64,000 nucleotides of DNA, taken from positions 1 to 64,000 of IMG/VR virus record IMGVR_UViG_3300033233_000001; one strand, written 5' to 3'. Under the pieces are notes generated by a model. That model was given only the letters and a program-made list of their open reading frames with translations, was not told the DNA's origin and made no database searches. Every line of letters begins with the position of its first letter. The first letter of the stretch is position 1. Position numbers and translations under genes: made by a program. Below, piece by piece: positions 10,337-62,333 of this stretch.

Positions 10337-11678
10337 TTGAAATCCTCCGCTCCCTAGCCCGGAGGCTGAGGAAGCGGATTCCCAGGCTCACGCCCAAGAT
10401 CTTCCTGCTTCAACCCCGACCGCACCGGATTCCGAAGAACACGATGTCTTACACCAGGTCCACAGGCAGTCACCGCGAGACCCGCGGCCAGTTGTCGCAG
10501 TCCAGCTGCGAGAACGTTACGTGCAGCATTCACGTCGCGGTCGTGCTCAGCGCCACACTCTGGGCACTGCCATTCGCGCACGCTCAGCGGCAGGTCATCG
10601 AGAAGATACCCGCAGCAGCTGCATGTCTTGGAACTCGGAAACCAACGGTCGACCTTGATCAGGGTACGACCGTACCACTCGCACTTGTACTCCAACTGCC
10701 TCACCAACTCGCCCCAGCCGACATCGCTGATGGCCCGTGCCAGGCTCCGGTTCTTGATCATCCCACTGACGTTGAGACCTTCAACCGCGATCACTTGGGT
10801 TTCGCGAACGAGGTTGGTCGTCAACTTGTGGAGATTGTCCAGACGCCGGTCTGCTACGCGAGCGTTCAACTTGCCGAGCTTGATGCGAGCCTTGTCCCGA
10901 TTCTTCGAGCCTTTCTTTTTGCGCGCGAGACTGCGCGACAGGAACCTCTTGCGCCCGAGTTCACGGTCGTCGTGACGCGGGTTCGCGACCTTTTCACCCG
11001 TCGAGAACGTAACCAGCGACGTGATGCCCAGGTCAAGGCCGACGGCGCTCTCGATGGGCAGCGGCTTCAAGCGCTCGACTTTGTCCTCGCAGAGCAGCGA
11101 GACGTGCCAGCGGCCGGCAGCGTCGAGACCGACGGTCACGGTCGAGGGGTCGACGTTCTCCGGAAGCGGACGACTCCAACGGATGCCGAGCGGCGTGTCC
11201 ATCTTCGCGAGGGTCAGCTTGCCGTCGCGCCAGGTGAACGCGCTACGCGTGAACTCTGCGGAGCCACCGTCACCCTTCTTCTTGAACCTCGGGAACCTCG
11301 CTTGTTTCTTGAAGAACCTCTGCCGAGCACCGTGCATGTGCCGCAAGGCCTGTTGGAGCGGGACACACGAAACCGTGTTCAGCCAAGCGAATTCCGGCAG
11401 CTTCTTCCACGCCGTCAGGTGGGCACTCTGCTTGTTGTACGTCGGCGACTTCTTGGTCGCCGCGTACGAATTGTTGCATTCGCCCAGGCTATGGTTGTAG
11501 ACCCAGCGTGCACAGCCGATTGTCCGACGCAGCAGGGGCTCCTGCTCGGGCGTCGGGTAGAACCGGTAGCGGAAGCCGCGGAGGACCACGCGCAGAGCGT
11601 AGGGCACTTCGGCGACGAGATCAAGAACCGTTTCCTCCCCTGCCTGCAAAGCCGAGGCAGGGGTTTCCACGGAGGATC
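10337..11678 (-). mobile_element. IS200/IS605-family tnpB-only element 1 (IS1341-like)
   Basis: Right end GAAT + CCGCTTCC/GGGAGCGG hairpin ending TCAA; left-end hairpin CCCCTGCC/GGCAGGGG; inferred target TCAG (11679-11682); in-frame empty-site reconstruction. Confidence 0.85.
10354..11670 (-). CDS. tnpB: TnpB RNA-guided nuclease (true start possibly GTG 11589)
   Basis: FRYRFYPTPEQ HTH, RuvC VGLDLG / IAVEGL / DRDVNAA, Zn finger CSCCG...CPECG. Confidence 0.95.
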   Translation of the reverse strand: METPASALQAGEETVLDLVAEVPYALRVVLRGFRYRFYPTPEQEPLLRRTIGCARWVYNHSLGECNNSYAATKKSPTYNKQSAHLTAWKKLPEFAWLNTVSCVPLQQALRHMHGARQRFFKKQARFPRFKKKGDGGSAEFTRSAFTWRDGKLTLAKMDTPLGIRWSRPLPENVDPSTVTVGLDAAGRWHVSLLCEDKVERLKPLPIESAVGLDLGITSLVTFSTGEKVANPRHDDRELGRKRFLSRSLARKKKGSKNRDKARIKLGKLNARVADRRLDNLHKLTTNLVRETQVIAVEGLNVSGMIKNRSLARAISDVGWGELVRQLEYKCEWYGRTLIKVDRWFPSSKTCSCCGYLLDDLPLSVREWQCPECGAEHDRDVNAARNVLAAGLRQLAAGLAVTACGPGVRHRVLRNPVRSGLKQEDLGREPGNPLPQPPG

Positions 11679-24099: not shown

Positions 24100-24909
24100 A
24101 TGACCTACCGAGCGGGCGTGCCGCTGTATGACCTTGACCTGCGTCGGGGCTCGTCGTTTTACACCGTGAACGCCGTGCCGATCCCTTCCTGGCGCTCGGT
24201 GCGAGCGCTGTACGGGCTCGGGGAGTCGCCGGCCCCGGCGCAGTTGGGTCGGATCAAGACGGCGGACGGCTGGTCGTACCAGATCACGCCGGAGGACGCG
24301 CTCTGGATCGCACGCTCGATCCAGTACGAGGGCGGGAACAGGATCGCAACGCTCTGGACCTACGCGCAGAGGCTCGCGCAGCGCCGCGGCACGAATCTCG
24401 CGACGCTCGTGCGCGGGCACAGCCAGCCGGTGAACCCGATGTGGGCGTCGGCGACGGCTTCAGGCTGCGTCGCGCATCCGGACCGGTGCACGCCGGCACA
24501 GCTTGCGCGCCGGCAGGAGGCAGCGACCCGACAGTGGGATGACCTGTCGTCTGCTTCGACAGTGCTGCGCTGGGCGCAGGCATACACGCCGAACGTCGTG
24601 CCGCGCGCGACGGACTTCGCCGACGCGACCGTCTCGCGGCACTTCTTGAGTCAGAACCCGCAGGCACGGGTCGTGATGCGCGACGGCAACTGGTATCTCG
24701 CGGAGGGCGCTGATAGCGCGCCGCGCGGTGGATCGATCGGGTGGCCGGAGAACTACGTCACGATCGAGTATGAGAGCCGGGTCGCTCGCCGAAGCCTCTT
24801 GGCCGGCGTGCCAAGCTGGGTTCCGTTTGCGGTGGCCGGGGGCGGTGGGCTGCTCGTGCTCGGCGGCGTCGCGGTCTGGGCCGCACGACAGCCGAAGGCG
24901 AAGATCTAA
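24100..24909 (+). CDS. SleB/hydrolase_2-like protein with C-terminal TM anchor
   Basis: EDALWIARSIQYEGG motif; hydrophobic C-terminus followed by basic tail. Confidence 0.45.
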   Translation: MTYRAGVPLYDLDLRRGSSFYTVNAVPIPSWRSVRALYGLGESPAPAQLGRIKTADGWSYQITPEDALWIARSIQYEGGNRIATLWTYAQRLAQRRGTNLATLVRGHSQPVNPMWASATASGCVAHPDRCTPAQLARRQEAATRQWDDLSSASTVLRWAQAYTPNVVPRATDFADATVSRHFLSQNPQARVVMRDGNWYLAEGADSAPRGGSIGWPENYVTIEYESRVARRSLLAGVPSWVPFAVAGGGGLLVLGGVAVWAARQPKAKI

Positions 24910-24925
24910 GGCAAGGAGCGCTGTC

Positions 24926-25903
24926 GTGAACTTCAAAAGCTACATCGTGTTGTTGCTGCTCGTCCTGTTTCCGTCGTGCGGGCCTCGTCCGCCTGATTCG
25001 GACGCTGGTCCGCCGGATTCTGGTCCGCCCGAGTTGACGCGCCTGCGCATCATCAACGGTTCGACCGGGACGCTCTGGATCTTCTATCAGATCGGCTCCG
25101 GCGGCGGCTCGATGTCAACGGCGCATCAGGTGCAACTCGCAGCAGGCGGACACATCGACTATCCGATCCCTGACGAAGGCCTCGCGGCCACTCGCTTCTG
25201 GGCAGGGTCTGGATGCGACGACACGGGGAACAACTGTGCGATCGGTCAGAGCGGTGGTCCCACGAGCGAGGGCTTCAACTGCCCGACGTACGGCTGTGCT
25301 CCGCCCGTCGACAGCAAGTTCGAGGGCACCTTCGGCTGTCTGCCGTCGGTGCCGACTGCCGACTGTCAGATCAACCCGTCGAGCCCGACGAGCGCGCCGC
25401 TTCCTACTACCGACTCCTGGGACACCAGCATGGTCGACGGCTTCACGCTGCCGTTCCGCGTCGACGTCATCGGCGACTGTCCGGGCGGCCCGACGAGCAA
25501 CGCGATCGACTGCTCGATGTTGCCGATGAGTATGTGTCCGACGGCCGAAGACCTCTCGACCGGCGGCATGTTCCCGGCGCTGGCCGCTGAGGACATGGAC
25601 GTCACGAACCCGTCGACGATGGCGATTGCCGGCTGCTACGCCGACTGTGCGCGCCTCACGTTCTCTCAGTGGGGCGGCCTCTCGTACGCGCCGGCTTCTC
25701 CCGAGGCGCAGATGTACTGCTGCCCGACGCCGCCGATCTCGCCCGATGCGTGTCGCACCGGGCCTGTCGCGAGCACGGGCTACACGGATCTTGTGCATCG
25801 GACCTGTCCGCAGGTCTATGCCTACTCGTACGACGACGGGACGGGGCTGTTCTCCTGTCCGGCCGGCGTGCGGTACGAGGTCACGTTCTACGCGGCGCAG
25901 TAG
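24926..25903 (+). CDS. Thaumatin-like (PR-5 family) secreted/lipoprotein
   Basis: RFWAGSGCD, KFEGTF, WDTSMVDGFTLP, CPQVYAYSYDD, FSC...YEVTF; 16 Cys after the signal Cys18; AAGGAG RBS. Confidence 0.85.
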   Translation: MNFKSYIVLLLLVLFPSCGPRPPDSDAGPPDSGPPELTRLRIINGSTGTLWIFYQIGSGGGSMSTAHQVQLAAGGHIDYPIPDEGLAATRFWAGSGCDDTGNNCAIGQSGGPTSEGFNCPTYGCAPPVDSKFEGTFGCLPSVPTADCQINPSSPTSAPLPTTDSWDTSMVDGFTLPFRVDVIGDCPGGPTSNAIDCSMLPMSMCPTAEDLSTGGMFPALAAEDMDVTNPSTMAIAGCYADCARLTFSQWGGLSYAPASPEAQMYCCPTPPISPDACRTGPVASTGYTDLVHRTCPQVYAYSYDDGTGLFSCPAGVRYEVTFYAAQ

Positions 25904-33176: not shown

Positions 33177-34475
33177 ACCTAACCCCGGCCTAAAGGCCGA
33201 GGCTTTGCACCTGAGTGACAACATGGAGATGCCCGTAGGTACCCCCAACACTCGACGCGTCCGGCCGGGTTACAGCGGCCAGGCTCATGGCACTGTACGT
33301 CGCGAGACCGCGACGGCTGATGTTCTGAGCCGCGATGGTATCGGCATGACCAGCGTGGCCACACCATACGCATTCAAAGACTGCCTGGCTCTTCCGGTTC
33401 GCCTTGCTGACGAAGCCGCACGCCGGACACGTCCTCGACGTGTTCCGGGGGTCGACCACCATCAGCGCGACGCCCGCCAAGCACGCCTTGTAGGTCACGA
33501 AGCCACGCAGCTGAGCAAAAGACCACGAGGAGCGCACCCGACGCTGTGCCTTCCGAACCGTTGTCCGCTCGCGGATGCCCGTCAGGTCTTCCAGGGCAAT
33601 CCCACGTCCGGTGTCTTTGGCACGGGTGACGATCTTCTTGCTCACGCGATGGTTCGTGTCTCTAGCGAATCTCATCTCCTTCCTGCGACGCTTCTTCAGA
33701 AGCCGCTTCGCACTCTTGGTACCAACAGACTGGAGCTTCGAGCGGGTGTTAGCGTACCGCTCGCGGACGACATTCAGGTGGTCTCCCGCGAAGACCGTAC
33801 CGTCCGAGTCGGTCGTGATGTTCACGACGCCGAGGTCTACGCCGAGAAAGTCGACGGGCTCTGCGGGCTTCTCGTACGGGATGCTGACGCTGACGAGCAG
33901 GTAGAACTCGTTGTCGCGGAAGACCAAGTCGGCCTCGCCGTACTTCGAGGAGAGCAGGCGTTCTCGGTCAGCGTCGCGGAAGAGGATGGGACAGCGGATG
34001 CGACCGTCGAGTGTCGTGAGCGTGATTTCCGTCGACTCCTTCTTGAACGAGTACAGTCTCGTGTCGTAGGCGACGCTGCCGCGCGGGCGGAAGGTCGGGC
34101 AGATACTGCGGTCGCGGACGTAGGCGTCGCAGACCTTTGCAATCGTCCGAATGGCCATCTGCGACGGGAGGCCGAAATCGGCTCGCATGTCGTAGTAGAA
34201 CAGCCGCTGGAGCCGGCGCTTGTCGGCGAGCTTGTGCTCGAAGGCTCGGGGCGCGAGCCAGTTGGCCGCAGCGTTCATGCGCTCCATGGTCGAGAGCAGC
34301 GAGTCGCGCGGCGCCTCGTCGAGCACGAGCTTGCCCTGGACAACCAGAACGGTCGGCGCGTCGGGCTTCTTCGGCTTGCACTTGCGAACCACGGGCGGAT
34401 GGTACCACAGATCTGGAGCACGGAGCAGCGCTTCCTCCCCGCCCTGAAGGACGGGGCTTCCGCGCTGGAGATGTG
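33173..34475 (-). mobile_element. IS200/IS605-family tnpB-only element 2
   Basis: Right end AAAG-CCTCGGCC/GGCCGGGG...GGTTTAC; left-end hairpin CCCCGTCC..GGGCGGGG; target TCAC (34476-34479); TnpA-tail remnant RFLPALKDGASA on + strand. Confidence 0.9.
33190..34392 (-). CDS. tnpB: TnpB RNA-guided nuclease, different clade from elements 1 and 3
   Basis: RuvC FLGVDLG / IALEDL / HADTIAA; CPACG...CVWCG. Confidence 0.95.
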   Translation of the reverse strand: MVRKCKPKKPDAPTVLVVQGKLVLDEAPRDSLLSTMERMNAAANWLAPRAFEHKLADKRRLQRLFYYDMRADFGLPSQMAIRTIAKVCDAYVRDRSICPTFRPRGSVAYDTRLYSFKKESTEITLTTLDGRIRCPILFRDADRERLLSSKYGEADLVFRDNEFYLLVSVSIPYEKPAEPVDFLGVDLGVVNITTDSDGTVFAGDHLNVVRERYANTRSKLQSVGTKSAKRLLKKRRRKEMRFARDTNHRVSKKIVTRAKDTGRGIALEDLTGIRERTTVRKAQRRVRSSWSFAQLRGFVTYKACLAGVALMVVDPRNTSRTCPACGFVSKANRKSQAVFECVWCGHAGHADTIAAQNISRRGLATYSAMSLAAVTRPDASSVGGTYGHLHVVTQVQSLGL

Positions 34476-43092: not shown

Positions 43093-43389
43093 ATGCCGCT
43101 ACTTCGCACAGATCTGGATCGTCGCTTCTTCCTCGACGTGACCGCCGACGGTGCCGTCTTCATTCGCGAGCGGGGACATCCGAAGATGTCCGGCGCACTG
43201 CCGACGTTCACGACCGACACGCACGACCAGGCGCTGATGCTTCAGCAGCGGCACTGCCGTCGAGCCCGAGACGGCTCGGGCATCTACCGGCTCAACGAGC
43301 CGCCGACCGATCTCGATGCTCTGGGGGGCATCACCGATCTGTTCCGGCTCACCTACGAGGCGATGCTCGCGCGGGAGCAGCGCGCATGA
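43093..43389 (+). CDS. Hypothetical protein
   Basis: 98 aa; first gene after a short intergenic gap. Confidence 0.6.
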   Translation: MPLLRTDLDRRFFLDVTADGAVFIRERGHPKMSGALPTFTTDTHDQALMLQQRHCRRARDGSGIYRLNEPPTDLDALGGITDLFRLTYEAMLAREQRA

Positions 43390-44300
43390 CGCACTCAGGC
43401 ATCGGCGTGGTCATCGCACGCTTCCAGACGACGGAGCTTCACGCGGGGCACCGTGCGCTCCTCGACGAGGTCACGGCGCGGCATCGGCATGTGCTGATCG
43501 TGCTCGGCGTCGCGCGCACGTACGTGCCGACGTTCCAGAACCCGCTGGACGTGGCGCGCCGTGAGCAGATGGTGCTCCACCGGTATCCGAACGCGAAGAT
43601 CGTGAGTCACCGCGACTGCCGCTCGAACGTGCGCTGGTCGGACGGGCTCGACAAGCTCATCGCGAGTGCGATCCCCGGCCAGACAGAAGCCACGCTCTAC
43701 GGGTCGCGCGCGAGCTTCATCGGCAGCTACACGGGCAAGTATCCGTACGTCGAGCTTCCGGAGATCGCGGACATCTCGGGGACCGAGCTTCGACAGGAAG
43801 CAGTCGACCGCCCCGCGCTGTCGCGCGAGTTTCGGGCGGGCGTCGTCTACACGGCGACGACGCGCCCGCCGCTGGTGTTCCAGACCGTCGACATCGCGAT
43901 CGTGAACGGCGATCGGACGCAGGTGCTGCTCGGCAGCAAGCTGGAGGACGACGGCGGCCTGCGCTTCATCGGCGGCTTCGTCGATCCGAAGGACGCGAGC
44001 CTCGAAGCGGCTGCCAAGCGCGAGGCGTTCGAGGAGACCGGAGGCATCGAGCTAGCGGACTTCCGGTACATCGGGTCGTCGAAGATCGACGACTGGCGGT
44101 ACCGGGACACGCGCGACGCGATCATGACGAGCTTCTTCGTCGCGACCCACGTCTTCGGCGCGCCAAAGGCATCGGACGATCTGGACGGGTCGGCGAAGTG
44201 GTATCCGATCTTCGAGATCCGAGACAAGCTCGTCGAGGAGCATCGCGTGCTCGAATCGATGCTGCGGGCGCACGGAGATGGCGCGCGGTGGTGGCGATGA
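43386..44300 (+). CDS. nadM: Bifunctional NMN adenylyltransferase / Nudix ADP-ribose pyrophosphatase (NadM-Nudix)
   Basis: ARFQ...HAGH, NPL...R; Nudix box GGFVDPKDASLEAAAKREAFEETG. Confidence 0.9.
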   Translation: MTHSGIGVVIARFQTTELHAGHRALLDEVTARHRHVLIVLGVARTYVPTFQNPLDVARREQMVLHRYPNAKIVSHRDCRSNVRWSDGLDKLIASAIPGQTEATLYGSRASFIGSYTGKYPYVELPEIADISGTELRQEAVDRPALSREFRAGVVYTATTRPPLVFQTVDIAIVNGDRTQVLLGSKLEDDGGLRFIGGFVDPKDASLEAAAKREAFEETGGIELADFRYIGSSKIDDWRYRDTRDAIMTSFFVATHVFGAPKASDDLDGSAKWYPIFEIRDKLVEEHRVLESMLRAHGDGARWWR

Positions 44301-44722
44301 GTGACGACGAGCGGCTTCGGCTCAAGAAGTTCCTTCTCCGCCTTCACTGGGTCCTGAACCATCCGAGTGCAGGCGGCATGGCGACCATGGCCTATGTACA
44401 TGGCTACGAGTACAAGGGGCCGGTGCTCGACCAGGGCGAGATCAGGACGATGGCCGGTCTGCCGGTGGAGCTTCCGAAGCCGGAGTATCCGGAAACCGAG
44501 TTCTGCGTCGAGCGCAGCCCGCCGCGGCACAACGAGTACCGTGAGATGGGCAGGCCGGTGGAGGCGAACATCGCGTTTCGCGGGACAGCCGAAGCGTGCC
44601 ACGCGTGGATCAAGAAGGAGCGTGCCGACAAACGCTACGACGTGAACACGACTGGCCGCATGCTCCGTACGGAAGAGGAGTGCGAGCGCGCGTTCTGCGC
44701 GCTGTACTGCGTCGAGATCTAA
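44297..44722 (+). CDS. Hypothetical protein
   Basis: Overlap-coupled. Confidence 0.55.
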   Translation: MSDDERLRLKKFLLRLHWVLNHPSAGGMATMAYVHGYEYKGPVLDQGEIRTMAGLPVELPKPEYPETEFCVERSPPRHNEYREMGRPVEANIAFRGTAEACHAWIKKERADKRYDVNTTGRMLRTEEECERAFCALYCVEI

Positions 44723-45546
44723 TGGAGCCCTGGCTAGAAGCTTTCATGATTGGCGACGCGTACGGAAGTGGCTTTGAAATGAAGCCGCCGGAGTACGTCG
44801 CGGAGTTCAACGACGGTCTGACGTACCGGCAGCACGGACTCGATCCGACGCATCGGCCTGGCATGCCGACCGACGACACACAGATGACGATGGCTGTGCA
44901 GGACGTCATGCAGGACGGCTGGGCGAGCGCTCTGCCAATCTCGTACGCCCGTGCCTTCTGCAAAGCATACGCGGCGGCGCCTGCTCCTGGGTACGGCAGG
45001 AGGATGCGCGAGAACCTGGAGGCGGCGATCCGCGCCGAAGCGCCTGGGGCGGCACTGATGCTCGCATGCCAGGGCGGGCTTGCGAGCGGCGTGTTCGATA
45101 CGTGCGGGGCCGCGATGCGTGCGCTTCCGTGCGCTGTCAGCCGGTCGAGCGGCGATAATAGTGATGTCGCCTGTTCGGCGGTCGTGCAGGCGCGATCGAC
45201 GCACCATCATCCGGACTCGATCGACGCGGCTATCGCGGTGGCGCTCGCCGCATGGGTTCCTCTCAGGCTCGACGTCGCGACCGATTTTGTCGAGTGGCCG
45301 TCGCCGTCCAAGTGGACGCCAGGTCAGTGGGAGCGCGGCACCACGCGCGGCAAGGACATCGTGCAGGCGGCGCTCGGGCTGCTCGTACGTCACGACTCGC
45401 TCCATCGGCTGCTGATCGAGTCGGTCGCGCTCGGCGGCGACGTCGACACGCTCGCGGCGCTCTGTCTCGGCATCGGCGCGCTCGCGCCGAAGCGGTGGAA
45501 GAACGATCTGCCGCAGGCGCTGCGGGATGGGCTGGTGCGGCCGTGA
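44722..45546 (+). CDS. ADP-ribosylglycohydrolase (ARH/DraG family)
   Basis: IGDAYG, TDDTQMT, GAAMRALP, GGDVDTLAA. Confidence 0.9.
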   Translation: MEPWLEAFMIGDAYGSGFEMKPPEYVAEFNDGLTYRQHGLDPTHRPGMPTDDTQMTMAVQDVMQDGWASALPISYARAFCKAYAAAPAPGYGRRMRENLEAAIRAEAPGAALMLACQGGLASGVFDTCGAAMRALPCAVSRSSGDNSDVACSAVVQARSTHHHPDSIDAAIAVALAAWVPLRLDVATDFVEWPSPSKWTPGQWERGTTRGKDIVQAALGLLVRHDSLHRLLIESVALGGDVDTLAALCLGIGALAPKRWKNDLPQALRDGLVRP

Positions 45547-46013
45547 TCGGCCAGCCAGGGGACGATGACGCTGCGGAGCGGTTCTATCGCGTCGTGCTCG
45601 CTGACGTGAGCGGGACCGCGACGGACGAAGAGAGCGACATGCTTCGCGCCGATCTCGACTCGGCGCAGGAATGGCGCGCGGTACTCGTGCGCATCTTGCA
45701 AGACACAGAGGCTGCTCTCACGCGGATTCGTGCGGACGTGCAGAGGAAGCACACCGACTGCTTCAAGCGTGGTTCGCGCGGCAAGCAGGAGTACCATGAC
45801 TACGCGGCGGCGAAGGAGCGCGAGCGCGCTGGGCTGGTGAAGCAAAAGGCCGCGGTCGTCGAGGCTCTGAAAGAAGCTAAGTCTGTCTTTGTGTCGCTCC
45901 ACGAGGAGAAGGAAACCCGGGACGGAGGCCAGTGGAATCGCATCGAGAAGAAGGTGGACGCGCTGACCGTGAAGCTCGACGCCCTTCTCGCGAAGATGGA
46001 CATGCGGCCGTGA
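45543..46013 (+). CDS. Coiled-coil hypothetical protein
   Basis: GTGA overlap. Confidence 0.6.
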   Translation: MIGQPGDDDAAERFYRVVLADVSGTATDEESDMLRADLDSAQEWRAVLVRILQDTEAALTRIRADVQRKHTDCFKRGSRGKQEYHDYAAAKERERAGLVKQKAAVVEALKEAKSVFVSLHEEKETRDGGQWNRIEKKVDALTVKLDALLAKMDMRP

Positions 46014-46070
46014 CGCTCGCTCGCAAGAAGTTGTCCGTGCTGCGCGACCACGTGGGCGACGAGCGCTTCC

Positions 46071-46223
46071 ATGACGGACGACGCGTGGTTGGAGATCGCC
46101 TCGGCGCTCAGCGTCGGCAAGCCGACCGTCAGTCGTTGGAAGAACGGAGTGATCGCGCCTCCGCCGACGGTGCGTCGGTGTCTTCGTCAGTGGTTGCTGA
46201 AGCGCATGGAGGAGAGCACATGA
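46071..46223 (+). CDS. Small XRE-type HTH protein
   Basis: Manual translation EIASALSVGKPTVSRWKNGVIAP. Confidence 0.6.
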   Translation: MTDDAWLEIASALSVGKPTVSRWKNGVIAPPPTVRRCLRQWLLKRMEEST

Positions 46224-46585
46224 CGATCATGGACTACGCGACGGAGATCCACGAGGCGTGTACGCGCGCCGCCGCCGACTTCTTCATCGACATCGAGCCT
46301 GGCCGTCGCATCATGCTCTCGCTCGACAACGACATGGCGGATGACGGCAGCTGCTTCGTGCTGCACCGCGAGCGTGTGGAAGAGGGGCCGCCGACGTGGG
46401 GCGTGTACTTCTGGCGGCCCTGGATCGGCGGTGGCGGTCGCGCGATGGTGCCACTCTCCGATGCGCCTCTGACGGCGAGACTCGACTTCATCGAGAGCGC
46501 CGGCCGGCTGCGAGAGGCCTACCTCAAGCAGATCGCGTGGTACGAGATGCGGGCATCGGCAAGATTCGGGAAGGCAAGCCCGTGA
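46220..46585 (+). CDS. Hypothetical protein
   Basis: GGAG RBS; ATGA overlap. Confidence 0.6.
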   Translation: MTIMDYATEIHEACTRAAADFFIDIEPGRRIMLSLDNDMADDGSCFVLHRERVEEGPPTWGVYFWRPWIGGGGRAMVPLSDAPLTARLDFIESAGRLREAYLKQIAWYEMRASARFGKASP

Positions 46586-46830
46586 GTGAGCACGAGTTCG
46601 ATCCGAAGTGTCCGGACTGTCGACCGGTACTGCTGGACCCGACGACCGGTCGCATGCTGGGGCCGAAAGACCCGGCGATGGTTGCAGCCAGCAAGGCCTG
46701 GGACGAGCAGCTGACGCGCGAACAGCAGGAGGCGTGTCATCGGGTCTGGGTGAAGAACAGCCGAGATCCCGCCGACCTGGAAGCGCTGGAGTGCTTCGCG
46801 GCCATGATGCAGAAGATGGCTGGGAACTGA
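46582..46830 (+). CDS. Hypothetical protein
   Basis: CPDC; GTGA overlap. Confidence 0.6.
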   Translation: MSEHEFDPKCPDCRPVLLDPTTGRMLGPKDPAMVAASKAWDEQLTREQQEACHRVWVKNSRDPADLEALECFAAMMQKMAGN

Positions 46831-46844
46831 GAGGAGACACCAAG

Positions 46845-48215
46845 ATGGGTAGCGGCGAGAACATTTTGCTAGCCAGCGACAGTTACAAGATTTCTCACTG
46901 GCGGCAATATCCGAAGGGCACGCAGCGCGTGTATTCCTTCATGGAGTCTCGCGGTGGCGTCCACGCCGACGTGACCTTCTTCGGCCTCCAGTACCTGCTG
47001 ACGCGGTACCTCGAAGGGCCGGTGGTTACGGCCGAAGATCTGGCCGAAGCCACTGACTTCTACCGCGCGCACTTCGGCGCAGATCTGCTGAACGTCGACG
47101 GCTGGCAGCACATCATCGACAAGCACGGCGGCCGTCTACCGGTCGAGATCTGCGCCGTTCCGGAGGGCACGGTCGTGCCCGTGCGCAACGTGCTCATGAC
47201 GATCGAGAACACGGACCCGAAGGTCCCGTGGCTGACGAATTTTCTAGAGACGTTGCTGTGCCAGGTGTGGTACCCGGTCACGGTTGCCACGCAATCGCGC
47301 GCGATGCGCAAGCTGATCCTCGACGCGCTGGAGCATACCGGCGACCCGTCTCTCGTGGATTTCAAGCTCCACGACTTCGGCTTCCGCGGCAGCACGTCGG
47401 TCGAGTCCGCTGGCATCGGCGCGGCGGCGCACCTCGTGAACTTCAAGGGCACTGACACCGTCGCTGGCCTCGTGCTCGCGCGCGACTACTACAGCGAGCC
47501 GATGGCCGGTTTTAGCGTGCCTGCCAGCGAACACAGCACCATCACGTCCTGGGGCCGCGAGCACGAGGTCGACGCGTACCGCAACATGCTCGACCAGTTC
47601 CCGACCGGGCTCGTGGCCTGCGTGTCGGACAGCTACGACATCTACGCGGCCTGTCGCGATCTCTGGGGTACCGAGCTTCGAGACCGCGTGCTCTCGCGCG
47701 ACGGCTGTCTCGTCGTGCGGCCGGACAGCGGCGATCCGCCGACCGTCGTCGTCACGGTGCTCGACATCCTCGGCGAGAAGTTCGGGTTCACCATCAACGA
47801 GAAGGGCTACCGCGTGCTCGACCCGCACGTCCGCGTCATCCAGGGAGACGGCATCGACTACGAGATGCTTGGGAAGATCCTCTCTGCGATGGAGCGTGCC
47901 CGCTGGTCGGCCGATAACGTCGCGTTCGGCTCTGGCGGGGGCCTTCTCCAGAAGGTGAACCGCGACACGCAGAAGTTTGCGATCAAGTGCTCGGCCGTGC
48001 AGATCAACGGTGAATGGCGTGACGTGCTCAAGGACCCGGTAACCGACCCTGGGAAGAAGTCGAAAGCCGGGCGCCTGCGTCTCGTCCGCGAGGACGGCGT
48101 GTACAAGACAGTGACCGGCGAGGGCCCGACGCTGCTGGAGCCGGTGTTCCGTGATGGCGTCGTGTTGCGGCGACAGACGTTCGCTGACGTGCGCCGCCGG
48201 GCTGTTGCCACATGA
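46845..48215 (+). CDS. nadV: Nicotinamide phosphoribosyltransferase (NAMPT)
   Basis: SDSYKISH, HDFGFRG, PASEHS, VSDSYD, RPDSGDP, IQGDGI, FGSGGGLLQ, RDTQKFAIKCS. Confidence 0.97.
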   Translation: MGSGENILLASDSYKISHWRQYPKGTQRVYSFMESRGGVHADVTFFGLQYLLTRYLEGPVVTAEDLAEATDFYRAHFGADLLNVDGWQHIIDKHGGRLPVEICAVPEGTVVPVRNVLMTIENTDPKVPWLTNFLETLLCQVWYPVTVATQSRAMRKLILDALEHTGDPSLVDFKLHDFGFRGSTSVESAGIGAAAHLVNFKGTDTVAGLVLARDYYSEPMAGFSVPASEHSTITSWGREHEVDAYRNMLDQFPTGLVACVSDSYDIYAACRDLWGTELRDRVLSRDGCLVVRPDSGDPPTVVVTVLDILGEKFGFTINEKGYRVLDPHVRVIQGDGIDYEMLGKILSAMERARWSADNVAFGSGGGLLQKVNRDTQKFAIKCSAVQINGEWRDVLKDPVTDPGKKSKAGRLRLVREDGVYKTVTGEGPTLLEPVFRDGVVLRRQTFADVRRRAVAT

Positions 48216-48478
48216 AGCCGCTAGAGTTCAAGGAGAAGATGTACGCGCTGCTCATGCGAGCGGCACAGAACGAGCTTGAGCCTAGCGTGGTCCTTTCCGA
48301 GCTTGGTGATGCGTACGCGTGTCTGGCTCACTGCGGGGGCGTATCGAAGGAAGACGCGTTGAAAGAGATAGCCGACCTCTACGACGACAACGTTGTCATT
48401 GGACACGAGATGGAACGTGAACGCGGCGTACACGGTAGAAACGGATGCTCCGATCCATCCCTTCGGAGACGGCGCTGA
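48212..48478 (+). CDS. Hypothetical protein whose 3' end runs into the first CRISPR repeat
   Basis: ATGA overlap with nadV; last codons encoded by repeat 1. Confidence 0.55.
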   Translation: MKPLEFKEKMYALLMRAAQNELEPSVVLSELGDAYACLAHCGGVSKEDALKEIADLYDDNVVIGHEMERERGVHGRNGCSDPSLRRRR

Positions 48479-48532
48479 CGGGGGGAAGACGATGCCGAGC
48501 AAGACGACTGTAGAAACGGATGCTCCGATCCA

Positions 48533-48994
48533 TCACTGTTCCTCGGCGCGGGAACCCCGTCCTTCAGGACGAGGAGGAGCGCCGCTCCGGTTTTGGTTCT
48601 GGACGTAGCGCGCGACGACTTCTAGCGGCGCGCCGCCGCACGACACGGCGCAGTAGCTCGGCGACCAGAAGTGATCTCCCCAGAGCACGTTCGTGACCTC
48701 GCGAAAGTTCTGCGCCCGCAGCCGTCGCGCGGACACACCCTTGAGCGAGTTCACGAGCTTGGCGATCGCGACCTTCGGCGGGTAGTCGATGAGCAGATGC
48801 GCGTGGTCCGGCTCGAAGTTGGCCTCCCGAAGCTCGCTTCCGAAGTCGGCGCAGACCTCAACCCACGACGCTCGCAGAATCTCGAACGCTCGCTCCGAGA
48901 TCGCGCCTCGCCGGTACTTCGGCACGAAGACCAAGTGCACGGACAGCTTGTGCACGACGTGCCGCCCCTTGCGAAAGTTCTCGACCTGTGCCAT
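48533..48994 (-). CDS. tnpA: IS200-type Y1 HUH transposase
   Basis: HLVFVPKYRR, DHAHLLI (HUH), LVNSLKGVSAR, FWSPSY, RYVQNQ. Confidence 0.97.
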   Translation of the reverse strand: MAQVENFRKGRHVVHKLSVHLVFVPKYRRGAISERAFEILRASWVEVCADFGSELREANFEPDHAHLLIDYPPKVAIAKLVNSLKGVSARRLRAQNFREVTNVLWGDHFWSPSYCAVSCGGAPLEVVARYVQNQNRSGAPPRPEGRGSRAEEQ

Positions 48995-50305
48995 CCTGGC
49001 GTTTCTAGCATGTCGGACACCGACGGCAAGACCAAAAAGCTCAGGACGTCTCGGTACCGGGTCTATCCGACCGACGAGCAGGTCGCCCGCATCGAAGCGT
49101 GGCAGGATCCGCTGCGTCTGCTCTGGAATCTCGGCAACCAGCAGTACTTGTTCTCGCAGGAGCGTTGCCGTTACGGTCGGAAGTGGCCGCACCCGTTCGA
49201 GCAGGCGAACCAGTTGACCGAACTTCGCGCTGAACACGAGCGGCTGCGCGACGTCCCGTACGATCTTGCCGCGCGCGTCTTCGTCGAGTTGAACCTGTCC
49301 TGGCAGCGATGCTGGGCTGGGCTCGCCGAGCAGCCGCGGTTCAAGTCGAAGAATCGCGGCGACTGGACGGTCATGTGCGAGCCGAACCCGAAGGTGTTTC
49401 GGGCCGAGGATGATGCGATCGTCTTCCCGAAGCTCGGGCGGATCGAAGCGGTCGTCCACCGTCCTCTGCTCGGCAAGCCGAAGACCTGCACGATTACCCG
49501 TGACATAGATGAGTGGTACGTCTCGATCGCCTGCGAAGTCGTACGCGATCCTGATGCGTTGCCGCCGCCCGTGCCGGTCGGCGCGCCGGTCGGCATCGAC
49601 CGCGGCGTAGTGAACCTGTTGATGGACAGCAACGCGCGGCCGACGGCGAACGCGCGGTACGACGACCAGACACGTGTGCAGGTCGCTCGTGCGCAGCGCT
49701 CTGCGGCCAAGAAGAAAAAGGGAGGAAAGAACAGGAAGAAAGCAAACAAGGTTGTATCCCGTCTGCGAAGGAAGGCGCGCCGGCAGCGCGACGCCGTTCT
49801 GCATCGCGAGAGTCTTCACTACGCCAAAAATCACAGCGTGGTGGTCATCGAGAAGCTGAACCTCCCGAACATGACGAGGAGTGCGAGTGGCACGGTCGAG
49901 GAGCCCGGTACGAACGTCGCGCAGAAGCGCGGGTTGAACCGGAGCATCCTCGGCGCGGGCCTCGGCAAGTTCGGGACGTACTTGAAGTACAAGGCCAAGG
50001 ACCACGGGTCGACGGTTGTCGAGGTACCGGCGGCCTACACGTCTCAGACGTGCTCGTCGTGCGGACACGTCGCGGCCGAGTCCCGGAAGACACAGAGCGA
50101 GTTCGAGTGCGTCGCGTGCGGTTATTGCCTGCATGCTGACGTGAACGCTGCCAAGGTGATACTCAGCCGTGGAACCCACGGCGGTGCAGTCTGCGGAGGA
50201 TCCGGCGCCCTAGGCCGCCCGAAGAAGCAGAAACTCCGCGTCGTGAGGCGCGGATCTCGATCTGTGTCCGGGAAAGCCCCGGACTTCAGGCCGGGGTAGG
50301 TTTAT
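48537..50305 (+). mobile_element. Complete IS605-type element 3 (divergent tnpA and tnpB)
   Basis: Left-end hairpin CCCCGTCC-TTCA-GGACGAGG after TCAC; right end AAAG-CCCCGG/CCGGGG-TAGGTTTAT; both ends align to element 2. Confidence 0.9.
49010..50299 (+). CDS. tnpB: TnpB RNA-guided nuclease, 429 aa
   Basis: RYRVYPTDEQ; RuvC VGIDRG / VVIEKL / HADVNAA; CSSCG...CVACG. Confidence 0.97.
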   Translation: MSDTDGKTKKLRTSRYRVYPTDEQVARIEAWQDPLRLLWNLGNQQYLFSQERCRYGRKWPHPFEQANQLTELRAEHERLRDVPYDLAARVFVELNLSWQRCWAGLAEQPRFKSKNRGDWTVMCEPNPKVFRAEDDAIVFPKLGRIEAVVHRPLLGKPKTCTITRDIDEWYVSIACEVVRDPDALPPPVPVGAPVGIDRGVVNLLMDSNARPTANARYDDQTRVQVARAQRSAAKKKKGGKNRKKANKVVSRLRRKARRQRDAVLHRESLHYAKNHSVVVIEKLNLPNMTRSASGTVEEPGTNVAQKRGLNRSILGAGLGKFGTYLKYKAKDHGSTVVEVPAAYTSQTCSSCGHVAAESRKTQSEFECVACGYCLHADVNAAKVILSRGTHGGAVCGGSGALGRPKKQKLRVVRRGSRSVSGKAPDFRPG

Positions 50306-50576
50306 GAAGGTAACCCTGACCACGGTGGTAGAAACGGATGCTCCGATCCATCCCTTCGGAGACTCGTAGGCCATCTTGCTACGCTCCGTCGGGTCTCGTG
50401 TAGAAACGGATGCTCCGATCCATCCATTCGGAGACGACGCACAAGGCCACCTGCGAGATCTCTGCGGGTTCGCGAGTAGAAACGGATGCTCCGATCCGTC
50501 CCCTCGGAGACCTCACCGGCACGTGCAGCCGGGCGCGATACTCGACGGACGGTAGGGTTCAAGGTATCCTCGCGAG

Positions 50577-51449: not shown

Positions 51450-51824
51450 ATGAGCAAGCAGTACACGGCGAAGATGCGTCCAGATGTGGGCATGTCTCGC
51501 GTCAATCTCGCCGGGCTCGTCCCCGACGAGATCATGTATGGCCCTGGTGGCTCATTGATCGTCGAAGTCGAGGTTGTTCGCGCAGTCACGTCGGAGTTCA
51601 TGCACGTGATGTTGCAGTTGCAGGAAGGGAGCCATCCAGAGGGGAACGTCGACATCATCTCAGGCTCGACGACTGTGTTCAGGATGTCGAGGAGAATCGA
51701 GGCCCGTCGTGGATGGGACCTAGTGGCGTGCTTTTACTACGGTGCGTGGTACTCGACGCCGGCCGTGCAGACCGCGGAGTCGGACAATTACGTCATCGTG
51801 CGCGTCTCGTCGAGACCGGCATGA
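51450..51824 (+). CDS. Hypothetical protein
   Basis: ATGA coupling. Confidence 0.55.
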   Translation: MSKQYTAKMRPDVGMSRVNLAGLVPDEIMYGPGGSLIVEVEVVRAVTSEFMHVMLQLQEGSHPEGNVDIISGSTTVFRMSRRIEARRGWDLVACFYYGAWYSTPAVQTAESDNYVIVRVSSRPA

Positions 51825-61949: not shown

Positions 61950-62333
61950 TCAGCCCTTCGCACGCTTCGCGGCGGGCGTGGTCGATGAGGATCGTCGGTC
62001 GCGAAGGCGAAGTTGCCGCCACGTGCGTCTTGAGGTACCGTCTGCGCTGGATGCTCCGATCCATCCACTCGGAGACGCCAGACGCGCGAGCCGCGCCCAC
62101 GCTTGCTGCGCCGCGGCCCCGAAGACGGGGCGCGCCGCGCCGGGGAGCATGACGCCGACGTCCGCCGGCAGCAGGCCAGTGGCGATCCAGTACTCGCCGG
62201 TCGGCGTGCCGTAGACCGGCTCCGCCTCGTCGATCTCGCGCTCCTGGGCTTCGACGAGCACTTCCGAGCGGCCGTCGAAGATCCACAGGCCGCTGTCGCC
62301 GCCCTGGTCCCAGGTGAGGTCGAAGATGCGCAT
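61950..62333 (-). CDS. Hypothetical protein whose 3' part reads through the solitary repeat
   Basis: TGATG coupling to the upstream gene. Confidence 0.5.
   Translation of the reverse strand: MRIFDLTWDQGGDSGLWIFDGRSEVLVEAQEREIDEAEPVYGTPTGEYWIATGLLPADVGVMLPGAARPVFGAAAQQAWARLARLASPSGWIGASSADGTSRRTWRQLRLRDRRSSSTTPAAKRAKG
62049..62076. repeat. Solitary 28-nt CRISPR repeat unit
   Basis: GGATGCTCCGATCCATCCACTCGGAGAC = repeat positions 9-36 with 2 mismatches. Confidence 0.85.

Follow-up and report, generated by a model that had tools for sequence, protein, structure and literature searches.

An IS200/IS605-family element with tnpA and tnpB, probably inserted into a repeat of a small CRISPR array on a phage-like replicon

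The DNA analyzed in this study (the window, 64,000 nucleotides) covers positions 1-64000 of the 297,749-bp contig IMG/VR UViG 3300033233_000001 (JGI Ga0334722_10000009). It was found to carry an intact, presumably autonomous IS200/IS605-family element with divergent tnpA and tnpB genes inside a CRISPR-like array. This arrangement is probably the result of an ordinary IS200/IS605 insertion into repeat 2 of a small, cas-less, type-V-like array on a phage-like replicon of ~298 kb, followed by a later deletion. The transposase target would most likely have been the CCAT in the hairpin loop of repeat 2. An earlier sequence-only reading of the same locus had proposed that the element entered a spacer, that the nuclease TnpB was thereby reprogrammed against the source of this spacer, and that the locus represents a nascent Cas12-like state. 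The features of the locus are listed in Table 1.

Table 1. Features of the array-borne IS200/IS605-family element, the repeat array and a solitary repeat copy (positions refer to the window; aa, amino acids; nt, nucleotides)
Feature	Start	End	Strand	Remarks
IS200/IS605-family element	48534	50305	+	left end 48534 (target CCAT) or 48537 (target TCAC)
tnpA, Y1 (HUH) transposase	48533	48994	-	153 aa; Pfam Y1_Tnp
tnpB	49010	50299	+	429 aa; Pfam OrfB_IS605, Cas12f1-like_TNB
Left-end subterminal imperfect palindrome	48555	48574	+	GGAA (48551-48554) 5′ of the foot
Right-end subterminal imperfect palindrome	50277	50296	+	AAAG 5′ of the foot; cleavage tetranucleotide 50302-50305 is TTAT
Predicted omegaRNA scaffold	50114	50305	+	overlaps the tnpB 3′ end; conserved helices common to 8 homologues
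Predicted omegaRNA guide	50306	50327	+	22 nt, unique, from right end to repeat 3; guide is the first 16-20 nt
Repeat 1	48435	48470	+	36 nt, consensus
Spacer 1	48471	48509	+	39 nt, unique
Repeat 2 remnant	48510	48533	+	first 24 nt of the repeat, all consensus; ends in CCAT (48530-48533)
Repeat 3, spacer 3, repeat 4, spacer 4, repeat 5	50328	50511	+	one mismatch in repeat 4 and two in repeat 5; spacer lengths 36 nt (spacer 3) and 40 nt (spacer 4)
Solitary repeat copy	62050	62076	+	3′ 27 nt of the repeat (hairpin and AC); outside the array

TnpA was matched over its full length by the Pfam family Y1_Tnp (E 5.8e-37), and its translation shows the HUH motif (HAH) and the C-terminal Tyr region. For TnpB, an alignment of 12 sequences (11 relatives) revealed that the RuvC triad D197/E281/D377 is invariant, as are the zinc-finger residues C348, C351, C367 and C370. 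The best matches of this protein include TnpB chains of solved structures with E-values of 1e-14 to 6e-32; TranC/Cas12 chains match it only distantly (LaTranC, E 2.5e-5). The closest TnpB relatives, identified in a protein database and in metagenomes, are 50-58% identical and were used to define the element ends. The best relative in GTDB genomes shows 33% identity. No closer copies of the insertion sequence (IS) were found by megablast against phages and plasmids, a copy above 58% protein identity was detected nowhere among the data searched, and the 298-kb contig contains no second copy of the end hairpins. The earlier statement that an intact tnpA/tnpB element lies within a CRISPR-like array is supported.

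As in IS605 and IS608, subterminal imperfect palindromes are located at both ends and inverted terminal repeats are absent. Hairpins of this type are present at ~100 IS200/IS605 ends in viral contigs. TTAC was found at the right end, 6-7 nt past the tnpB stop codon, in 9 of 11 homologues. Two copies of one related IS at different sites (L146 and L148) are identical through ...TAGCATTAC and diverge immediately afterwards; the common terminal sequence of their right ends is ...GGGGTAGCATTAC. Based on the alignment to these two ends and on the nine homologues with TTAC, the right end of the element is set at position 50305, which agrees with the sequence-only reading. The last four bases of the window element are TTAT, not the TTAC of its relatives.

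At the DNA level, conservation extends over the 190 nt that precede the right end and stops there. RNAalifold, applied to a nine-sequence alignment, identified 48 consensus pairs, of which 12 showed compensatory changes. Since the region is conserved with compensatory changes, the omegaRNA scaffold appears to be intact. The omegaRNA is presumably expressed. The 22 nt that follow it occur once in the window and are located where the 3′ part of a spacer would lie, which is the predicted guide position; in this point the sequence-only reading holds. These 22 nt would most simply be the 3′ remnant of a spacer. As the TnpB guide is the DNA after the right end, the predicted guide is now this putative spacer remnant, and an array-derived guide is a trivial outcome of TnpB guides always coming from the right flank. 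Such a guide matches the donor site that is re-formed on excision, and TnpB thereby favors transposon retention (bioRxiv 10.1101/2023.03.14.532601; discussed in PMC10691335). In one homologous element (L149:2773-2815), the right end is directly followed by a tandem duplication of the 20 nt that start with the terminus ATTAC, which looks like a duplication of terminus plus guide.

The array consists of four full repeats and one truncated repeat with a repeat spacing of 72-76 nt. The 36-nt repeat is exact at 48435-48470 and 50328-50363, with one mismatch at 50400-50435 and two at 50476-50511; no full-repeat copies are expected in shuffled sequence. Repeat 2, which starts at 48510, matches the consensus over 24-25 nt. 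The three complete spacers have lengths of 39, 36 and 40 nt and their mutual likeness is no greater than shuffled sequence permits. An origin of the spacers as diverged duplicates was considered and rejected (best pair p = 0.04 among 28 comparisons). The repeat/spacer geometry speaks for a CRISPR array.

The repeat folds as a 3′ hairpin composed of CTCCG, an 11-nt loop and CGGAG, followed by AC. The stem is kept in all repeat copies and the loop bases vary. The most degenerate repeat is repeat 5, the last in the array. Because of the conserved stem, the variable loop and the degenerate last repeat, the layout fits transcription from the plus strand and the type-V-like order of handle and then spacer.

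Cas genes were not found among 52 open reading frames (ORFs) sampled across the 64-kb window, which are not its complete gene set. A 1,082-aa ORF at the window start was tried as a Cas effector candidate and rejected, as it matches neither PDB Cas12/TnpB chains nor the TnpB profile. In Rfam, neither a CRISPR-DR family nor any other family was matched. In IMG/VR, a search for protospacers of spacers 3 and 4 and of the first 20 nt (5′) of the guide gave the source contig as the only hit; spacer 1 was not scanned there. Among the cultured phages of INPHARED, spacer and guide matches were at chance level only (E 0.7 or higher), and the 64-kb window contains no protospacers.

An exact 22-nt search for the repeat in IMG/VR and the JGI metagenomes likewise returned the source contig alone. 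With a looser hairpin pattern, two solitary repeat copies could be identified, both in the source contig. The copy at 62050-62076 has two changed loop bases, is devoid of the 5′ 9 nt of the repeat and lies 11.5 kb downstream of the array. The other (L151:1802-1837, corresponding to L172:11672-11707 on the minus strand) is nearly full length with 4 changes in 36 nt and is located at ~205 kb of the contig, ~150 kb from the array, near a DnaJ-domain gene. In the surrounding 20 kb, Pfam marks show no Cas-like gene. The search for Cas near this copy used precomputed Pfam marks and checks of one 987-aa ORF, with ~210 kb of the contig unread. This ORF, 4 kb off the solitary repeat, was also rejected as a Cas effector, matching neither PDB Cas12/TnpB chains nor the TnpB profile. 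The solitary copies recall the cas-less mini-arrays and solitary repeat units of viruses that are documented in PMC7099407. Shared with those systems are the short cas-less array on a viral-type replicon and the presence of solitary repeat copies elsewhere in the genome; in this array, no spacer target and no cognate host system were identified, which differs from the virus-borne mini-arrays.

In IS608, the transposase locates the sites to be cleaved through their base pairing with the tetranucleotide that lies 5′ of each hairpin (PMC3201880). The window element follows this rule at the left end if CCAT is the target (with GGAA), but not with TCAC; at the right end, AAAG faces TTAT, whose last base is not that of the TTAC present in 9 of 11 relatives. 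In 21 of 28 related left-end-like contexts from viral contigs, target base 4 was found to form a Watson-Crick pair with the base immediately 5′ of the left hairpin (G with C in 10, A with T in 10 and T with A in one). In the window this base is an A, which predicts a T. CCAT (48530-48533) fits this prediction and TCAC (48533-48536) does not. In addition, the three closest left ends (window, L142 and L145) read TCCAT and then CA, followed by a variable C, T or G; the majority of relatives also start with CA after the target. Given the fourth-base pairing rule and these three left ends, CCAT is favored as the target and TAM (target-adjacent motif), and the left boundary likely lies at 48533/48534. 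The left end at 48537 after TCAC, as assigned before, is therefore the less likely choice.

CCAT is consensus repeat sequence and is located in the loop of the repeat hairpin. With the target inside the repeat, it was probably a repeat and not a spacer that the element entered or now adjoins. At 48533-48535, the stop codon of tnpA (TGA, minus strand) extends across the proposed left boundary and takes its last base from the T of the target; both points also apply to L142 and L145. The left flank of three homologous elements from unrelated genomes (48525-48535; L142:1512-1522; L145:979-990) consists of CCG, one or two bases and TCCATCA. This common flank is far above chance expectation and suggests an extended, possibly structural target preference, which the CRISPR repeat would meet.

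A simple insertion at CCAT predicts a 12-nt remainder of the repeat at the right flank. Instead, 22 unique nt lead straight into repeat 3, so that no less than the last 12 nt of repeat 2 and a further ~14-18 nt of spacer are absent. Together with the terminus TTAT in place of TTAC, this does not agree with the clean insertion assumed in the sequence-only reading. In the simplest history, a single later deletion at the right junction would have taken away the remainder of repeat 2, the 5′ part of a spacer (perhaps further units as well) and probably also the element's terminal C, so that 22 nt of spacer now abut the right end. Such a deletion would also account for the odd terminal T. The array would thereby have been damaged, with repeat 2 deprived of its 3′ hairpin handle, one spacer destroyed and the array split in two. 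If TnpA excised the element, the re-joined donor site (target plus 22 nt) would be cut by TnpB, and the element would be regained by recombination with a sister genome that still carries it; this is the usual selfish role expected of TnpB and its guide.

Several points weigh against insertion into the repeat followed by a right-side deletion. The choice between CCAT and TCAC depends on the covariation rule and three close relatives, and CCAT would lie 21 nt from the hairpin, the largest spacing within the 15-21 nt range of relatives. Neither an empty-site allele nor a related phage was found, so the ancestral unit and the order of events are not seen. A search for the empty site via synteny showed that NAMPT relatives in other viral contigs (at most 65% identity) share only the NAMPT-Nudix pair and have neither the array nor common neighbors. 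The tnpB gene is co-oriented with the array, and repeats 3-5 begin 29 nt past its stop codon on the same strand, with the degenerate repeat 5 distal; conserved Cas12 loci are arranged in this way, the array following the co-oriented gene directly downstream (PMC10691335). Finally, insertion at CCAT in a spacer followed by a left microhomology deletion requires no right-side deletion.

This last alternative is the same ordinary insertion with another history, in which the element entered at CCAT or TCAC in a spacer and a short deletion between this site and the matching CCAT(C) in repeat 2 later took away the repeat end and the beginning of the spacer. At the junction, repeat and target would have 4-5 nt in common, which suits slippage or a microhomology deletion, and the right junction would be left pristine as made by TnpA. 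The TTAT terminus, however, would need a separate cause, since in 9 of 11 relatives TTAC is paired to the AAAG guide, and a perfect CCAT target is already present in the repeat. We consider this history unlikely, though not negligible. It is more doubtful that the repeats form a non-CRISPR structured family (RNA handles of another kind of system, or regulatory hairpins) in one member of which the element landed. The repeat length of 36 nt, the 72-76-nt spacing of the five repeats and their mutually unrelated 36-40-nt spacers form a CRISPR signature, and the stem is conserved, the loop variable and the most degenerate repeat at one end. Moreover, viral cas-less mini-arrays and solitary units have been documented. 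This stands against the absence of cas genes from the sampled ORFs and around the solitary copy ~150 kb away, the unmatched Rfam CRISPR-DR families, the spacers without any match and the two solitary copies elsewhere in the genome.

Misjoins classically arise at repeats, and the repeat-spacer unit in which the IS lies is incomplete, so that the IS of another genome could have been spliced in through the repeats during assembly. Such a chimera, which the sequence-only reading had itself named as a risk, has almost no probability. All three assemblies (JGI, ENA and Logan) show the same junctions, although they may share raw reads and are not fully independent. Between the JGI and ENA contigs, one single-nucleotide difference was detected in 7.3 kb, at 51789 and outside the feature. 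A 1.9-kb Logan contig (run SRR10861649) equals window positions 48441-50356 exactly and runs without a break from repeat 1 and spacer 1 via the truncated repeat, the complete element and the 22 nt into repeat 3. As two switches back into the same phage would be required, a double chimera is very unlikely.

In the model of the sequence-only reading, insertion at a TAM within a spacer reprograms TnpB against the source of the spacer and creates an incipient TnpB-to-Cas12 state that keeps tnpA. It is supported by the apparent 3′ part of a spacer in the guide position, by the orientation of tnpB with the array downstream as in conserved Cas12 loci, and by the proposal that one route to type V is a transposon inserting beside an existing array, with the array downstream (PMC10691335). 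The left flank, however, is repeat and not spacer sequence, and ~23-27 nt or more of the repeat-spacer unit have been lost. Since the TAM would come from the repeat, a protospacer would bear a TAM next to the matching 22 nt by chance only. A search for TAM plus guide found the source contig alone, and a protospacer with or without TAM was found neither in viral contigs nor in cultured phages nor in the window.

A relationship between repeat and omegaRNA could not be detected either. The best local score between the repeat and the omegaRNA region was 14, a value reached by 40% of random window segments. An array-like repeat was present at 0 of 46 loci that hold TnpB relatives (26-58% identity). 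Within tnpB, positions 49931-49949 (+), ~375 nt upstream of the right end, are complementary to the repeat core in 16 of 19 positions with a 10-nt exact stretch; this segment encodes the conserved LNRSIL motif of TnpB. By our own estimate, an element as large as this one has a ~5% chance of containing the 10-nt exact core, and the complementarity is probably coincidental. There is accordingly no sign of TnpB using the CRISPR repeats or of array capture. With the repeat unrelated to the omegaRNA, no array beside the relatives of TnpB, tnpA intact and two unrelated tnpB genes of the window in non-array sites, the proposed nascent Cas12-like state is highly improbable. If it were nevertheless right, the locus would be a living intermediate between transposon nuclease and CRISPR effector, so far inferred from trees alone.

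The arrangement matches the proposed type V route, so a small probability is kept for a snapshot of a transposon entering an array on the way to an incipient system. Read-through transcription would then fuse the scaffold to the spacer remnant and the downstream units. TnpB might already hit the source element of the spacer, or the original repeat-derived guide might have hit every repeat copy, with the deletion as an escape.

The element resembles IS605 in its divergent tnpA and tnpB genes. In IS608, right cleavage takes place 10 nt 3′ of the hairpin foot and the left target is located 19 nt 5′, compared to 9 nt and 18-21 nt in this element. It differs from IS605/IS608-type elements in being single-copy in the contig with closest TnpB relatives of 50-58% identity, in its right terminus (TTAT vs. 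the TTAC of the family) and probably in its target (CCAT vs. the TCAY of most relatives). With OMEGA TnpB (ISDra2 and relatives) it has in common the protein architecture and catalytic triad, an omegaRNA that covers the tnpB 3′ end and ends at the right end, and a guide taken from the flank. By analogy, the same role would be expected, the cutting of the empty donor site for homing. The difference is that the flank here is CRISPR-array sequence in a phage-like genome.

Transposable elements in CRISPR arrays have been documented before, such as the miniature inverted-repeat transposable element HqIRS37 in a spacer of Haloquadratum walsbyi (PMC3119063). In both cases a mobile element interrupts a cas-less array and array sequence is lost, but the element described here encodes its own RNA-guided nuclease with a predicted guide read from the array. 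TranC and early type V systems (Cas12f-like) likewise have a TnpB-sized RuvC nuclease directly upstream of a co-oriented array. Their repeat and tracrRNA derive from a split omegaRNA, and the association of nuclease and array is conserved in a clade. Here, by contrast, repeat and omegaRNA are unrelated, the tnpA gene and the two transposon ends are still in place and none of the relatives is accompanied by an array.

The window has a G+C content of ~65%. The same genome with another start point was identified as ENA ERZ27248239 k141_4574762 (297,555 vs. 297,749 bp), in which the array is found at 228 kb compared to 48 kb in the JGI contig. Because of this circularly permuted version, the replicon is probably circular, terminally redundant or circularly permuted. 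The scanned ORFs encode an integrase, DNA methyltransferases, a 5′-3′ exonuclease, an RNA ligase, a NAMPT-Nudix NAD-salvage pair and an ADP-ribosylglycohydrolase. Capsid, terminase or tail proteins were not matched by any of these ORFs, so the term phage rests on the IMG/VR label and is confirmed by no window gene. The 64-kb window contains no tRNAs. A thaumatin-family domain (Pfam E 3e-16), an unusual feature in a phage-like replicon, is encoded by an ORF at 24728-25903 (+). The NAMPT and Nudix/cytidylyltransferase pair (43386-48215), an NAD salvage cassette directly upstream of the array, is the sole part of the array neighborhood common to other viral contigs, with full-length NAMPT matches of 42-65% identity.

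Two more tnpB genes are located in the window at 10354-11670 (-) and 33190-34392 (-), encoding proteins of 438 and 400 aa. Each is ~29% identical to the array-borne TnpB and sited outside arrays, and no Y1 tnpA was found beside them in the flanking ORFs tested. The window thus holds three independent TnpB lineages in 64 kb, and the replicon is a frequent landing place for such elements.

The value of the locus is modest. It provides a concrete example of a TnpB transposon beside a pre-existing, co-oriented array, as one model of Cas12 origin requires, and a probable case of a CRISPR repeat itself supplying the target of the transposase. Furthermore, it shows that a huge-phage-like genome can hold three unrelated tnpB elements.

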